From contig CM119379.1 in NCBI GenBank assembly GCA_051294905.1, forward strand, positions 25,296,001 through 25,360,000: DNA of 64,000 nucleotides, read 5' to 3'. Below, piece by piece: positions 5,952-12,649 of the stretch (its first letter is position 1; each line of letters starts with the position of its first letter). The position numbers were made by a program, and so were the translations under genes. A model generated the notes under the pieces. That model worked only from the letters and a program-made list of their open reading frames with translations. It was not told where the DNA came from and did no database searches. The DNA is from Botryllus schlosseri (Eukaryota).

Positions 5952-7030
5952 CGTTAACCGCAAAACGATCTTTTTTTTGTTATAACCATTCGTTCACTCT
6001 CTGTGACAAAAAACATACTTGGCGGATTACAGTCAAAAGGAGGTGCACATATTTTGTCAATGTTGAATAACTACAATGTTGAAAACTATTCTACCGAGTA
6101 GCATCAATGTCGGCAACTATCAACCCTATACCAGCAACAGCAACAATTTCATTATTTTACTCGAGTAGCAACATATCGGCAACTATCTGGGAACGATACT
6201 TCAATATTCTACTAAGTACCAAGTAGCACCACGCCAGCAGTCTCAGCACTGATCCTGCCAACAATATGCACGCATTCTCATTAATCTAGTGACATATACG
6301 AGATTGGCATAGGGATTGTGCAAGTACCGTAATATTACTGCTGTAGTGCAGTGTTTCATCAACATTGAAATAAAAGTGTAACGTTCTAGTATCGGTTATG
6401 AACGACAAAAAAATATGAACAGAATATATTCAAGGCATTCTAAATGACTGATTGTTTTTTTTTACAATACAGCTGCCTTAGCACAACGCCCGAGCTCAAC
6501 AGCGAACTGTGGTAACTGCAACACCAGTACAAAACCGAGGGCACTGTCGCCACACCATCCCTCCACCTCTGAAGCAACTATCTATATATATGAGCTTATT
6601 GACCAAGCTCAACGTCAAGCTACTGTTGCATCAACATGCAGCGCATCAGTGCACTAACAGATTGTAGTCGTGTTGTTTGTCAAGTTCTCACTAAATCGTA
6701 TAAAGCCAATATGTGCATTGTGCAGTTCGGCTTGTGTTGAAACCGCTGAGCTATATAAACCGTAATTTCAGAATATTGCGGTACCATAAAATCATAGCAA
6801 TTTACAGCGTAGCTGGCATGGAGAGTTCCATCTGAATACGATCGATGTTGTGGTTAACAGCGACACCTATCGCTAACGTAATACTTTTTCGTCGTCACCC
6901 GCCAGAACAGAGATGTAAACAGTAGCCGTAGTAACTAGTAACGCTAACTTTCTATACCTGTGGAACTGTGGATTCTGTGTACTTATATCCAGTTATAGTT
7001 GGACGTTGGTACTACAACATAGTCCCAACT

Positions 7031-10000
7031 ATGAGCTCCAATGCCAAACTTTATAAAAGCAGAGGCGGAACGTACTGCTGTATTCCTGAATGCACAAGCT
7101 CAAGTACAAAAGGCGGGTTCAGCCTGTACAAAATCCCTACTAGTTCTGGAAAGCAGTTTGGAGTGAGCACAAAGCAATGGGCGGAGGAGCTTCACCAGGT
7201 AAGATATCTATAGTAAAGAAATGTTATGAAAATGGCATCCCCATAATGTTGGATAATATAGCTCTTACAAAGAACACTGAATCGCGGGATTTTGACAGAA
7301 ATATCCCAACTTGTGTCAGTCTCAAAATTTTGATTTTACAGGTAATCTTCAGATATCGATATGATGCAAATTTCAACATAAAGGTGAAATCAGGAAAAGC
7401 ATATATATGCTCAAGACACTTCCAAGATTGCGATATTCAGCATTCAAGTTGCCGCTCTTTTCTTAAGATGGGAGTGCTTCCAATTTTAAATTTACCAATG
7501 AAATCTCATCCCTCCAAAATTCCCGAAAAAAGACGACTCATTCAAAAAGTTTGTGACAAAACAACCAAGGAAAAAAGGACATCAATTTCAACAATCGATG
7601 GCATTTTGGATTCCTGGAGAACACTTCAACTAAATGGTTGGCGTTGCTTTCAAGCTTCTGATTACTTGCTTCACCTAAGCTATTACGAAAATCCCTTCCT
7701 GCATTCGACCCCTGACGTTAGTCTCCTCGTCACAGAGAAGGACGAATGTCTTCAATTATCTGTTGCATTTGCTGGGGAGTATGCAATGCAATTATCAACC
7801 GAATTAGAATTTGGGACTAAAAGTTTAGAGGATATGCTGCAGTTTCTTCAAACAATGAAAGTCTGTGAAGGCTATGAATCTGTTCCCAACAATGGAGGTT
7901 GGATTGAAAAGAAAGTTCCTCATATGCGTGAGGGTAGATTGGGTTATACCAGAAGGTAAGCAATGTTTTCTGCCACAGTTTAGCCCAATCCACAACATTT
8001 GCATTCTAGATTTTTCAGTGATGATTGCCAAGTCGCCTATTATAGGAAATCGTTGGTATGCCAAACATGTATGATGCACCATGTGGAGTGCATTAACAGT
8101 TTGCAGCGCAGATTGGAACGCAAAGAACGAACTGAAGATCTTCCCTTAGAGAAGACAGCTCCTTTATCAAAGTGCACTAAAGAGAGGCTGAAATGTACTG
8201 TTAGCTCACATCGCACGAGGTATTCATTCTTACAAATATCAGCATAAATTAGCAAATGCTATGTTTGAAACTACCCTATGTAATCTTAGAATCCGTCAGT
8301 TAGAAAAAGAGTCGAAGGATCATGGTGTTACAGTATCACACGCTTTTGAGAATTTAATAGCCAAAGTATCAGATGAGGATAATCTACTTCGTGACTGGTG
8401 GACATGTCAAAAACGGTTACATGAGACTAAGAGCATCCATGGGAGACGTTATGCTCCTTCTGTAATAAGGTAGGAACATCACCCAGTATTATGTATCAGG
8501 GGAGTGAACTATATTTCGTAAATTTGCTACAGATATTGCTTGAAACTTTATGCGAAGTCTCCATCTGCCTACCGGCTAACTCAGAACATTATGATCCTAC
8601 CCAGTGCTCGTACGCTTCGCAACGAAAGGGTTAAAGCAGTTAACAGGTGCAGCATTGGAGTACAGTCAGGTGTTACCAAAAGGATTCGTAACGCAGTCAA
8701 AGCTACAGAAAATTATCATGAACAGTTTGCTGTGGTTTGCATTGACGAAATGACCATAAAAGGCAGGATAGTTTTGGTGTATTCATGTATAGAAGGGAAT
8801 TTATTCTAATTTTATCTCTATAGAGGATCTTGTGTTTCAGTCAAGAAATGGAAAAGTTATTGGTTTTGTAGATTATGACAGTGATGATCTTAATTGCTTG
8901 TCTTCATCATCATCCAAGGTTGCGACTCACATGCTCGCTGTTTATATCCGAGGTAAAGTGCTCCTAAAACTTTTACAATTCTTTTACTATCTCGTTCTTA
9001 TTTAACACAGGAGTTACAAATAAAAAACTGGACGGTGTAGTTGCATTCTACCCAACGAGCGGTGCTTCGTCAGAAGATCTATTCATGGTCCTTTGCCATT
9101 TGCTAGTGGAAATTCCTTATCAAACGGGTGTAACCATTGTTGGTGTAGTGTGTAAGATTTATAATTGATATCATGTCATAGTTACTTTAACATGTACATG
9201 TACATGCTGGTCATCTACAAACGCCATAAATTATGCAATTCGTAGCTTTTTTCACAACTGCACTATTTCAGTTGATGGTCTTGCGGCAAATCGTGCAGTA
9301 TTGAAGTTGCTGTGCAACGTTGAGGAAAATGGAGAAACTCAGTATAGGATGACGAACCCAGTGGAACCTACACGGTGAGAGCCGTGTGTTCAATGTCATA
9401 ATTGACAGAGAGTTGTTGATAATAATACATTATTTTTCAGGTTCATTTACTTTGTTCCAGATCCTCCACATCTTTTAAAAACGGCACGAAACAATTTACT
9501 TAATCCCAAGAAATGCATGTGGAACAATGGACACATTACAATGCAGCCAATCAAAGATTTAGTGAGGGTAGACTAGTGCATTATAATATTTTGTAGGATA
9601 TGTTTATCCTATATGTTCATGCAGAAGGATATTGCGCGTGGCGACTTGAGATTTTACCCACAGCTGACAGAATCGCATATATCACCAACTCCGTGGGAGA
9701 AAATGAATGTTCGTCTAGCTGCGCAAACTCTTTCCTTCACATTAGGTAACTATAATATGACTTTTATGAAACATAACAAATTCAATTTTATAATCTGAGG
9801 AGCACGCTGTGAATTAACTGATCATTCTGAGCACCAAGATTGAATACATCAGAAATTTTGCTATTTCCTATAGGCTTATGGTGGAACTGTACCCAATTTC
9901 TTTTAGGTTCTGCATTGAGTGAGGCATCACCTGCATTGTCGAAGTTTCTCTTTACTATGGACAAGTGGTTTGATTCAATGAATGCTGGATTCCAAGGATC

Positions 10001-10385
10001 CAAATTCAAACCACAGCGCCGGCCATATTATTCAGTTAACGATGACCGTTTGATTTGGCTTGAACAAGAATTCCTAACTTACCTAAATGATTGGCGGGTT
10101 CAGGCTGAAACAAGACCCCTAATGGGTGATGTGAATCGATCCTTAATGATGCTGAGCACTGCGACTGAACAAGGTTTACAAACTGCCACTAAATCCATGA
10201 TTGCCATTGTAAGAGAGTGTTTGAGGATGGGGGCTGATTATGTACTGCCCCGCAGAGTCAACCAAGACCCGCTCGAATCTTATTTCGGTCATCAGAGACA
10301 GCAATGTGCACGAACAGACGCACCTTCTGTGGCACTATTTAGTGCCAATGCCCGATCAGCTGAGGTGTTGCGTGGGGCTTATTGA
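7031..10385 (+). CDS. P-element-type transposase (THAP zinc finger + RNase H DDE core), 11 exons: 7031-7198, 7342-7955, 8010-8219, 8290-8469, 8533-8762, 8824-8952, 9011-9151, 9272-9374, 9441-9567, 9625-9745, 9907-10385; ~833 aa
   Basis: THAP motifs YCCIPEC...W...YICSRHF...VLPILNLP. Core motifs LKLYAKSPSAY..LPSARTLR, CIDEMTIK, FDGLAANR, DPPHLLKTARNNL, KMNVRLAAQTLS, NQDPLESYFG. Exon lengths sum to 2502 nt in one frame. Intron 8763-8823 is GC-AG. Confidence 0.92.
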
Positions 10386-10490
10386 TTTGAGTTCAAGTTT
10401 ACAATAAATTCAACAGAGAAGAAATTGTTATTTTATTGTAAAGAGAGTTACGAGATGTCGAAACAGGCACTTGAAACTTATTAATGAAAT

Positions 10491-11608
10491 TCATTCTTTG
10501 AGCTTTTTTCGTATAGCTGCAGATCGCCTTTTATTTAATTTGGCCTGATTGTGTGCAGCTAATAAATGTTTGAAGTGCATGTGTGCGCGTGCACGCACAA
10601 ATCTTCTGATGAGTAATATCAGCACATCATTCCACGTCACATTGCTGGAAGTACTTAACGCATTGATGACTGCTTGCTCGTCCATGGATTTACTATTAAT
10701 TTGTTTGCGGACTTCCACTTCTGCCGCAATCACAATTGTCATAAATGCATCACTGGGCACGATCAAAAATCCACGGTTCACTTTTTCATATTCCGGGCAA
10801 AGGGAACCAGATTGAGATATCTGCGAAGATACCCACTTTGCATCTTCACCGGAGAACTTCTTAAGTCCCCACTTTAACAGCGCTCCGGATATATACTGCA
10901 ACACCTTTCTGTCATCGTCCGTAAGTGTCGAGTTGTTTGAAGCAGATCTCTGCCCCATTGGTGTTCGTAAACGTATTACTTGGGGAATGACTGCAGTCAG
11001 CATTCTCTTGATATCAATTTCCGTAGGGTCATGGTCGTGTACGGAATAAGTTTTGCGTAACAGCTCAGAATAAATTTTGAGCATATTCTGTTTCGTCCCG
11101 CGGATTTTAAAAATGTCACCAGTCATAGTTTCCCGGAGACCACTCGATATTTCCAGTTTTGACTCTGCTATGGCCTGTTCTATGATGTCTTTTACTAGTG
11201 GAAGAAGTTCATCGGTACCAGAACCAAATAATATTTCCACGCAGAACGGTCCCGGACTTTCGATCAATTCCCCCGGAACAGAAATTTCATCATCCATCTG
11301 ATAAATATAATATCAAGGTCAATGGAATTTCAATTGATAAAGCCTGCAACTGTAACTTATTCACATCGTATAGGCCAAGGACGGTGTTTGATTTGAAAGA
11401 CACTTTCCTATATTTAAATTGTTACAGTATCGCGTGCTTTGAAATGTAAATTAGTAAATGAGCTCAACAAGTTTTCAAAATGATCACAAAACTGCTAATA
11501 GCCGCACTGCAGCAAGGGAATGAGATGATATGGGATACTCACGTCGTCAAAAATCTCCAGCAATTCAGCTTCGCTCAAATCCATCTTCAACAATTCACTT
11601 ACTAGCTT
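10491..11608 (-). CDS. Second transposon gene (spliced; exons 11543-11608 and 10491-11297, plus a probable upstream exon ending at 11709); C-terminal half resembles the P-transposase C-terminal helical domain
   Basis: Open 268-codon terminal exon preceded by acceptor tttatcag. Phase-0 exon KLVSELLKMDLSEAELLEIFDD with cttacag/gtgagt. Motifs LTDDDRKVLQYISGALLK, VNRGFLIVPSDAF, LIRRFVRARAHMHF. Start codon not resolved. Confidence 0.8.
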
Positions 11609-12649
11609 CTGTAAGGACAGTTATGAAAATAAATGATAAATTCCATTGATTTTAAATGAATAATCATTTTAATGCTGCTGCAATACAACGCGACTTGTCT
11701 CCGCTCACGCGCTCAGTGGCGTCACAGTCATACGAAGATTGTCGGCGATTGTCTGTCGGCACCCCATTGTGTGAAACAATGACGATTTCTGACTTCGACG
11801 TCGATTTTGGGTGGGTTTCAGTTCCCGGGCCGGATTTCAACTTATATATTTAGAATCAGTGCGAAATCTGCTTTTGATTGATACCAGTTTTATTCACTTT
11901 TGCGCTCTGGTCCCATCTGTATGATTACCGAGAAACACACTACAGCAGGTTGAAAAGCAGCATCTGTTATCTCACCACTGGGGGCAGTGCGAAACACAAC
12001 ATCGCATACCGAGTTTCCATGCCAGCTACGCTGTAAATTGCTATGATAAAATCACACAAGGATGTTGAGCAATAGTGGATCGATATTTCATGGATTGCCA
12101 GAGAACATGTTCTGTGAATCCGGCCGCACTCATGGCATGCAGGTTGCAGGCGCTACACATCTGTCAAAAGTGGGGAACATCATCATCAATAATAATAGAA
12201 GATATTCAGGTTCGTCTCACCATGAATACACTATAGAATGTAAACGTTTACATTCTATAAATACACTAATGACTAAGCTATTGTCAATTGAAGTTCTGCA
12301 CTTCCGAGCGTCTCTACTATTGTAATTATATATTATCAATCTAAGACACTACTATATTGCGATTTAATCGTAGTGAAGCTCATATATCCGCTGCTGATGT
12401 TGTTGTCGTTCCGATTCACATTTATGTGCAAATTGTGCACTGTGCAGATTGCGCAATGCACATCGAATGAAAATTCGGAAAGAAGCCATAGAAATGTGAA
12501 AGGACCATGTTTCAGCAAGTACAGGCGCGCTGCAAATGAGCGAAGCCAAGTCCGTAATCTCAGGATACAGGCTGAGGTTGTCGGTGAAAACCGTCCCATG
12601 CAGACGCGGACAGGTTTTTTCTGTTATCCACTCAGGGTTAGTGTTTTTT

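Follow-up and report, generated by a model that had tools for sequence, protein, structure and literature searches.

The window analysed here, 64,000 nucleotides of the Botryllus schlosseri assembly GCA_051294905.1 (contig CM119379.1, positions 25,296,001 to 25,360,000), carries a P-superfamily element at window positions 6793-12045, with two tail-to-tail genes inside one TIR-bounded unit. The plus-strand gene (ORF1) encodes a P-type transposase without the C-terminal domain (CTD). The minus-strand gene (ORF2) encodes a separate protein which, judged by its predicted structure, is a homologue of that domain. The reading of a P transposon whose CTD is encoded by a conserved gene of its own on the opposite strand is thus largely supported. 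Taking anatomy and mechanism together, we find it fairly probable that the element inserted recently, is apparently autonomous and belongs to a P-superfamily lineage with a transposase split at the RNaseH/CTD boundary, whose two parts assemble in trans.

Element boundaries and subterminal motifs

P-superfamily transposons are marked by GTP dependence and 17-nt staggered cleavage, and their TSDs measure 7-8 bp. The element is bounded by 30-bp TIRs at 6793-6822 (+) and 12016-12045 (-), which are 100% complementary to each other, and by a perfect 7-bp TSD, ATAAAAT, at 6786-6792 and 12046-12052. Both its TIRs and its TSD are therefore those of the superfamily, and the original prediction of a single element with TIRs and a perfect 7-bp TSD held. 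The repeat-finder reported TIR arms of 32 nt; the extra is a palindromic AT from the flank, and the true TIR is 30 nt long. The TIR pattern occurs at two places only in the window, with 0 expected by chance, and the left boundary is supported by the flank of another copy, which diverges exactly at 6793. A second copy of the element in the window was considered and rejected, as none is present.

A 10-bp motif, CGATGTTGTG, lies 20 nt inside the left TIR (6843-6852, +) and 11 nt inside the right TIR (11995-12004, -). Apart from the TIR, it is the only stretch of at least 9 nt common to both end regions in inverted orientation, and its left copy is a candidate THAP binding site. The Drosophila P element has 31-bp TIRs, 10-bp sites at 9 and 21 bp and an 8-bp TSD (PMC7776569). 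The two elements are thus alike in their TIRs of about 30 bp and in the unequal spacing of the 10-bp subterminal motif, while the TSD is 7 bp here and 8 bp in the fly.

ORF1 encodes a transposase without the CTD

The model of ORF1 (7031-10385, +) is based on RNA joints, Pfam pieces and the alignment to chain 6p5a_A of the Drosophila P transposase. The gene runs from the ATG at 7031 to the stop at 10383-10385 in 11 exons and encodes 833 aa, with no internal stops after removal of ten introns. Introns 1-4 lie at 7199-7341, 7956-8009, 8220-8289 and 8470-8532, intron 5 at 8763-8823 (GC-AG; alternative 8771-8825) and introns 6-10 at 8953-9010, 9152-9271, 9375-9440, 9568-9624 and 9746-9906, all on the plus strand. 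Six of the ten are present as GT..AG joints in transcript contigs from two runs; a third RNA run shows use of the acceptor at 9271. An AATAAA (10403-10408, +) follows 18 nt past the stop.

The exon pieces match the Pfam THAP, P-element HTH, TNP-like RNaseH_N, GBD and RNaseH_C families in collinear order, the catalytic region through partial matches to PF21787 (RNaseH_N), PF21788 (GBD) and PF21789 (RNaseH_C). Individually the matches are weak (E 0.0017 to 0.13). The THAP pieces, which cover profile positions 1-37 (E 0.055) and 49-87 (E 0.0017), each stay under the Pfam cut-off because an intron splits the domain. The ORF1 homologue in L007 exceeds the RNaseH_C cut-off with 29.2 bits. The domain order (THAP, HTH, RNaseH with GBD) is that of the Drosophila P element; unlike the fly gene, ORF1 is spread over 11 exons, and up to the end of RNaseH its product exceeds the fly protein by about 270 residues.

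The ORF1 motif NQDPLESYFG aligns with NQDIVEHFFG (E-motif) of 6p5a_A, and ORF1 ends 32 residues beyond it, so the predicted plus-strand gene with THAP and catalytic motifs and a stop about 30 codons past NQDPLESYFG was found as described. The last exon can be aligned to 6p5a_A until about 8 residues short of the ORF1 C-terminus. In Drosophila P transposase the RNaseH domain spans residues 200-566 and the CTD residues 566-751 (PMC10824691); judged by sequence alignment, the end of ORF1 coincides with this RNaseH/CTD boundary. All ORF1 relatives end at the same point, and a search with the last exon returned close CTD-less relatives only. The ORF1 strand retains no exon resembling the CTD.

ORF2 is a convergent gene on the minus strand

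The main exon of ORF2 (11297-10491, -) is an open reading frame of 268 codons plus stop and contains the motifs quoted in the original prediction. The protein would have 268 aa, or 282 aa if a putative acidic first exon, MDLSEAELLEIFDD (11543-11584, -), is included. The homologue P0009 begins with the same peptide (MDLSEAELMRIFDD), and in L007 FDEEELMKIMDE followed by GT lies upstream of ORF2. Between the two exons the gene model places a putative GT..AG intron (11542-11298, -). Its splicing was seen in no read or transcript contig, and the contigs 11278-11417 and 11474-12028 cross both intron ends unspliced. Several GT-AG introns had been claimed for the minus-strand gene; at most this one is left. 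An AATAAA (10432-10437, -) lies 53 nt past the ORF2 stop.

RNA reads covering ORF2 were few and their strand was ambiguous, with the first mate mostly on the plus strand over both genes. Of the two spliced transcripts expected, the RNA data thus contain the ORF1 joints, while ORF2 splicing was not seen. ORF2 may be transcribed from the right end of the element.

The stop codons (10385 on the plus and 10491 on the minus strand) face each other tail-to-tail across a gap of 105 nt, in agreement with the prediction. Misassembly of this joint, which had been raised as a possible objection, is unlikely because contigs from independent studies span it (10342-10808 and 10316-10620). The suggestion that the convergent 3' ends yield dsRNA is weak since the AATAAA of each gene falls inside the gap. 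An overlap of the 3' ends would be only about 10-30 nt, and we rejected substantial dsRNA from convergent transcripts.

ORF2 has the predicted fold of the P transposase CTD

AlphaFold gave a model of ORF2 with a pLDDT of 84 when run on a 17-sequence alignment; this run replaced one on the ORF2 sequence alone (pLDDT 42). Blocks with pLDDT >90 cover most of residues 131-250. Residues 123-252 (10542-10931, -), which contain the conserved helix with Y..G..L.WG and the first part of the long, basic helix at the C-terminus, superpose on residues 617-734 of the Drosophila CTD (6p5a_B) with Z 11.4 and an rmsd of 2.3 Å over 113 of the 118 residues, at a sequence identity of 17% in the structural alignment. 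The model thus has the all-alpha fold of the CTD (6P5A). Among 48,161 PDB representatives 6p5a_B was the sole chain with Z >= 8. The runner-up, 3fbz_A (Z 7.9), lies 3.5 Z units lower and matches the N-terminal half, and for residues 123-252 the second-best match reached Z 6.2. The best Swiss-Prot model match was human THAP9 (610-853), and THAP9_C (PF22824)/P-transposase clusters were the best matches in the ESM-Atlas and the AFDB clusters. A Ciona-type 176-aa protein, H2YBQ4, was also among the structural matches.

The Drosophila CTD is all-alpha, contains an acidic region and ends in a basic helix that extends to the target DNA (PMC7776569). In ORF2 the first 45 residues, modelled with low confidence, have a net charge of -14, and the last 50 (net +11) form one long helix (224-267), so a terminal basic helix after an acidic, flexible segment is found here as well. 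The N-terminal half (28-117) gave generic helical-bundle matches only and is an extra helical domain relative to the Drosophila protein. The CTD-like part is not covalently C-terminal to RNaseH, as ORF2 starts from its own ATG on the other strand and no fused relatives were found.

A Pfam search with ORF2 and 16 relatives returned no family at E <= 1, and PF12596 and PF22824 were unmatched; in this the ORF2 family, which falls under every Pfam threshold, is unlike the THAP9_C proteins. phmmer and profile searches of PDB sequences found nothing, and a word-indexed protein search gave no match with ORF2 and a single known member with the family alignment. Scores in a language-model atlas feature search were <=0.45, an exact look-up of the ORF2 sequence among contigs gave no record and a metagenome scan contained no relatives. 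As sequence profiles do not connect ORF2 with PF12596 or PF22824, the homology rests on predicted structure. The original prediction of ORF2 as the P C-terminal domain was thus upheld at the level of fold, with THAP9 on top, and not at the level of profile similarity. On the structural model, ORF2 as a stand-alone homologue of the P/THAP9 CTD is largely supported.

The two-gene layout recurs and ORF2 is under purifying selection

Tail-to-tail pairs of ORF1 and ORF2 are also present in L003-L005, L007, L008 and the P0009 contig, with ORF2 identities of 27-51%, and the pairing with a CTD-less transposase is seen in at least four other diverged lineages. A one-off internal inversion in this copy, considered in the original prediction, can be set aside, as the pair recurs. 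The 27 relatives of ORF2 are stand-alone proteins of about 240-300 aa and none of them (0/27) is a long transposase; a fusion of ORF2 and transposase in one long protein was absent from the 1.84 billion representatives searched. The open frame of 240-300 aa persists in lineages just 27-30% identical. Of the 14 inter-copy differences listed for ORF2, read in the minus frame, 12 are synonymous and two non-synonymous (P about 1e-6 to 8e-5), and ORF2 is under purifying selection.

Proposed mechanism and alternative explanations

In the fly the variable module is likewise the CTD: with it the protein is the active 87-kDa form, without it the 66-kDa repressor. There, however, splicing of intron 3 adds the CTD to a single polypeptide, whereas the Botryllus CTD-like protein is encoded by a separate gene on the opposite strand. 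Building on the anatomy, the fold identity, the recurrent layout and the selection signal established above, we infer that ORF2 assembles with ORF1 in trans, that it is needed and that it may have a regulatory role. ORF1 would recognise the ends through THAP and HTH and perform catalysis through RNaseH with its GTP-binding insertion. ORF2, with its own start codon, AATAAA and acidic N-terminus, would supply a four-helix N-domain together with the CTD, which is all-helical and has a long basic helix at its end. It would bind the ORF1 oligomer non-covalently and occupy the site that the CTD fills when the Drosophila protein forms its strand-transfer complex, flanked by one subunit's RNaseH and a second subunit's GBD, where it would contact the looped-out transposon strand and target DNA. 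Such a split is plausible because the Drosophila CTD is attached through a flexible, disordered linker and packs against another subunit (PMC7776569). ORF1 by itself would behave like the 66-kDa protein of Drosophila: it would bind the ends without transposing and would probably be repressive; expression of ORF2, rather than splicing-in of a CTD exon, would license transposition. Our tentative proposal, for which we claim somewhat less than even confidence, is that a P lineage turned the repressor-or-transposase switch into a two-gene system, with ORF1 as an end-binding repressor and ORF2 as an obligate licensing subunit in trans under control of a right-end promoter. Were this the case, the element would encode a naturally split transposase, and the P CTD would be capable of acting as a free subunit.

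ORF2 could instead be a genuine CTD-derived gene that serves mainly as a regulator or inhibitor, for example by titrating ORF1 or occupying DNA, with ORF1 transposing alone or with a host factor. Its faster divergence compared with the last exon of ORF1 (identity of 29% vs 59% in the P0009 contig and 51% vs 65% in L003) fits such a role, as do the N-domain without a clear counterpart in the solved CTD and the internally deleted L003 copy, whose intact ORF2 is a possible trans-acting modulator. We nevertheless consider it unlikely, since only the CTD-containing 87-kDa protein transposes in Drosophila and its CTD contacts transposon and target DNA at many points (PMC7776569), while here the ORF1 strand has kept no CTD-like exon and the pairing with ORF2 has been maintained over deep divergence.

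Inversion of the 3' end of a gene would also give the tail-to-tail geometry, and ORF2 might then be the functionless product of an ancestral 3'-exon inversion in a family that canonical single-gene P transposases now mobilise in trans. The data hold no direct evidence of an ORF2 protein or spliced mRNA, which agrees with such a fossil. However, the frame is still open at very low identity, the inter-copy differences are predominantly synonymous, ORF2 has its own ATG, conserved acidic N-terminal peptide and AATAAA, and long fused proteins are missing from the representatives searched; this origin is very improbable. Slightly harder still to credit is that ORF2 is a helical protein of other descent, whether captured or accessory, whose likeness to the P CTD is convergent or artefactual. 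The missing Pfam and sequence matches and the low identity in the structural alignment would suit it, and helical folds can reach a middling Z by chance. Yet the P CTD was the top match in four independent libraries and with two aligners, it stands clear of the next match with nearly the whole target covered, and the partner ORF1 is without exactly that domain.

Comparison with other transposons

P elements are a textbook model of transposition and its control. Of all parts of the enzyme the CTD is understood least, and in flies its presence separates transposase from repressor. A natural lineage with the CTD as a separate conserved gene would be a ready trans-complementation system for studying the role of the CTD, its action as a free subunit and the control of its supply. 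Annotation pipelines would call such ORF1 genes truncated and ORF2 an orphan.

The P superfamily would become one of the few groups of eukaryotic cut-and-paste transposons whose elements encode two proteins. PIF/Harbinger (with a Myb-like ORF) and ProtoRAG are both TIR-bounded, and their catalytic protein depends, or probably depends, on a second protein encoded by the element; in ProtoRAG the RAG1-like and RAG2-like genes are also arranged tail-to-tail. In contrast to ORF2, which corresponds to the transposase's own CTD, the second protein of these elements is not a detached transposase domain, and ORF2 is related to Myb-like and RAG2 proteins neither in sequence nor in fold. Human THAP9, whose C-terminal part was the best Swiss-Prot match, differs: it is domesticated and immobile, and encodes a single polypeptide.

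The literature searched, which left out Kimbacher et al. 2009, contains no report of a two-gene P element. That study reportedly describes ascidian P elements (Pcin/Ciona P-homologous elements) with multi-exon P transposase genes, TIRs and TSDs. On this description, they resemble the ORF1/ORF2 element in combining these three features in sea squirts.

One lineage (L001/L002) carries ORF2 on the same strand as ORF1, 3.5 kb downstream. Its element was searched for TIRs and none was convincing; its ORF1 and ORF2 may be spliced into one mRNA.

ORF2 resembles the C-terminal domain of P transposase

The minus-strand gene of the P-superfamily transposon (ORF2) was originally predicted to encode the C-terminal domain (CTD) of P transposase. 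In sequence-based searches (Pfam, PDB by sequence and by profile, a word-indexed search and an atlas search by features) ORF2 gave no match. However, its AlphaFold model, built from a 17-sequence alignment, is all-helical with a mean pLDDT of 84, and Foldseek placed 6p5a_B at the top of the PDB matches (probability 1.00, TM by target 0.65). This chain represents the CTD in the strand-transfer complex of Drosophila P transposase. Re-alignment with VIA-align superposed ORF2 residues 123-252 on 617-734 of this chain (Z 11.4, rmsd 2.3 Å, 113/118 residues), and the next entry had Z 5.7. When 48,161 PDB representatives were scanned with VIA-align independently of Foldseek, 6p5a_B was again found and was the sole chain with Z >= 8; the next one for the C-terminal half had Z 6.2.

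The same relationship was seen among predicted structures. Human THAP9 (610-853) was the best of the Swiss-Prot AlphaFold models and Drosophila P transposase (534-740) ranked fifth. Many AFDB fold clusters, of proteins named THAP9 or P transposase, matched through their C-terminal parts with probability 1.00, and in the ESM Atlas search by shape, rows 1-5 were clusters of THAP9_C (PF22824) or of full-length P-like transposases. The N-terminal half (ORF2 28-117) forms a four-helix unit with generic structure matches only. ORF2 starts acidic, with a net charge of -14 for residues 1-45, and ends in a long basic helix, with +11 for the final 50 residues; this pattern fits the published CTD. ORF2 thus shares the CTD fold, but neither matches its Pfam profile nor belongs to a single polypeptide with the rest of the transposase. 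From the predicted structure, and not from a profile match, we conclude that ORF2 is probably homologous to the C-terminal domain of P transposase and THAP9, from which it has diverged.

ORF1 ends where the C-terminal domain would begin

The plus-strand gene (ORF1) has an open frame of 833 aa once ten introns are removed, from the ATG at 7031 to the stop at 10383-10385. Its domains were searched exon by exon, not on the spliced protein, and the matches came in the order THAP (profile positions 1-37, then 49-87), P-element HTH, TNP-like RNaseH_N (1-37, then 40-76), GTP-binding insertion domain (2-33, then 40-68) and RNaseH_C (positions 3-32 of 35). Single exon matches are weak, but since they are collinear the assignment is safe. 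The last exon aligns with 6p5a_A, Drosophila P transposase, over NQDIVEHFFG; beyond the aligned block ORF1 continues for about 8 residues. In the Drosophila protein the RNaseH domain spans 200-566 and the CTD 566-751 (PMC10824691). The end of ORF1 thus coincides with the RNaseH/CTD boundary, which confirms that the plus-strand gene carries THAP and the catalytic region without a CTD.

Both genes lie within one transposon

The element at 6793-12045 is a transposon of the P superfamily and shows the testable defining features of this group. As expected, it is one unit: terminal inverted repeats (TIRs) of 30 bp, 100% complementary, lie at both its limits and nowhere else in the window (0 expected by chance), and a perfect 7-bp target-site duplication, ATAAAAT, is present on both sides, compared with 8 bp in the Drosophila P element. 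Contigs from other runs part from the window sequence exactly at 6793 and just beyond 12045 and continue into differing flanks, three or more of them on the right side, so the element is one member of a multi-copy family.

A 10-bp subterminal inverted motif, CGATGTTGTG, is found at 6843-6852, 20 nt in from the left TIR, and at 11995-12004, 11 nt in from the right one, and by analogy it is a candidate THAP site. In the Drosophila P element (PMC7776569) the TIRs are 31 bp long and 10-bp transposase sites follow at distances of 9 and 21 bp; the unequal 20/11-nt spacing echoes this arrangement. At another locus, contigs of runs X12 and X5 join 6808 to 12025 between different flanks. The joint consists of 16 nt from the start of the left TIR, 8 filler letters (TACGCTGG) and 21 nt from the end of the right TIR. 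It may represent either a miniature element made up of TIRs only or the footprint of an excision that left TIR stubs, as P excision does.

ORF2 comprises 268 codons (11297-10491, minus strand). The two genes converge as anticipated, with 105 nt between their stops, and this gap holds one AATAAA signal per gene, at 10403 (+) for ORF1 and at 10437-10432 (-) for ORF2. The prediction that ORF2 has its own GT-AG introns held in part. A putative first exon of 14 codons, MDLSEAELLEIFDD, lies in frame at 11584-11543 (-) and can be joined through one GT..AG intron. Two homologues from other assemblies support it, as P0009 starts with MDLSEAELMRIFDD and the sequence upstream of the L007 ORF2 reads FDEEELMKIMDE followed by GT. 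However, the splice was seen in no read or contig and two contigs cross the intron ends unspliced, so this exon stays putative.

When 1.84 billion representatives were searched exhaustively with HMMER, 27 relatives of ORF2 came up at E <= 0.001 (18 of these at E <= 1e-10), with no long transposase among them. They span 73-298 aa, the complete ones about 240-300 aa, and 17 could be aligned end to end. When ORF2 was compared with other copies from the same species in contigs and reads, 12 of the 14 listed differences were synonymous in the minus-strand frame; 11 fell on third codon positions, where the other two frames would place 2 and 1 (P ~1e-6 to 8e-5). For ORF1, 12/18 were synonymous. Both counts are samples of the best-supported differences and not a census.

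The tail-to-tail layout recurs

The convergent layout is not a one-off inversion, since it recurs in other public assemblies. On the P0009 contig, whose ORF2 is ~29% identical to that of the window, minus-strand genes with RNaseH_C and RNaseH_N matches begin 104 bp past the ORF2 stop. The genes are also tail-to-tail at L007 (ORF2 identity 27%, 63 bp apart), L008 (30%, 11 bp apart) and L003-L005 (51%). All ORF1 relatives end 35-45 residues past NQDPLE. L003 (1-3525) is an internal-deletion derivative that has kept ORF1 13-111 (THAP exons) and 755-830 (last exon) together with an intact ORF2. It resembles a KP-like derivative, but still encodes the CTD protein.

A different order was found in two ~95% identical copies on long contigs, L001 (1-16789) and L002 (1-18789), where ORF2 lies 3.5 kb downstream of ORF1 on the same strand. 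L001 is without the second half of ORF1 (L002 2707-5413). Their homology extends ~3 kb beyond ORF2, and a search for TIRs or element ends in this lineage found none. ORF1 and ORF2 may be spliced together here. Retrotransposon pol genes are present at L001 1-909.

A possible split transposase

In Drosophila, a flexible, disordered linker holds the CTD, which contacts the looped-out transposon strand and points its basic helix toward target DNA (PMC7776569). Because it already acts on the neighbouring subunit through a floppy tether, the CTD is a plausible candidate for detachment. The fly 66-kDa protein, which is without the C-terminal third, binds to P DNA and acts as a repressor; transposition is brought about only by the 87-kDa protein, which has the CTD (PMC7776569). 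By analogy with the former, ORF1 alone would bind the ends without completing transposition, and like the additional part of the latter, ORF2 would complete the transpososome in trans. A split transposase with ORF2 acting in trans on ORF1 is thus a plausible mechanism.

PIF/Harbinger and ProtoRAG are two-protein cut-and-paste elements. The element described here would work like them, but its second protein would be a domain detached from its own transposase. A P element that is split or has two genes was described in none of the texts reached by full-text literature searches, which did not extend to Repbase or to the 2009 paper on Ciona P elements.

Transcripts of ORF1

Transcript contigs of two runs, with a word depth of ~35 over ORF1, show GT..AG joints for six ORF1 introns, and the acceptor at 9271 is used by a rarer joint in a third run. 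The other four predicted introns (8220-8289, 8470-8532, 8763-8823 and 9152-9271) are retained in the assembled transcripts of two runs. These contigs are unbroken across 8008-8950 and 9009-9373, and their source copy differs by ~1.3% from that of the window. With the four introns retained, the frame stops at 8247 and would give a THAP-bearing protein of ~330 aa. The retention could be regulated, like that of intron 3 in the fly P element, or could reflect an assembly preference. In a bulk RNA run, a few reads fell on ORF1 and ORF2, all from other copies and with ambiguous strand.

Other copies carry 13-nt insertions resembling TGTACATGTACAT at 9192-9201, in a short TGTACA repeat within the predicted intron 9152-9271. 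A low-depth alternative GT..AG joint, 7953/9270, was also observed in run X12. It skips 1316 nt between the exon-2 donor and the acceptor of the exon with the second catalytic Asp, and would remove the HTH and the first part of the RNaseH domain from ORF1.
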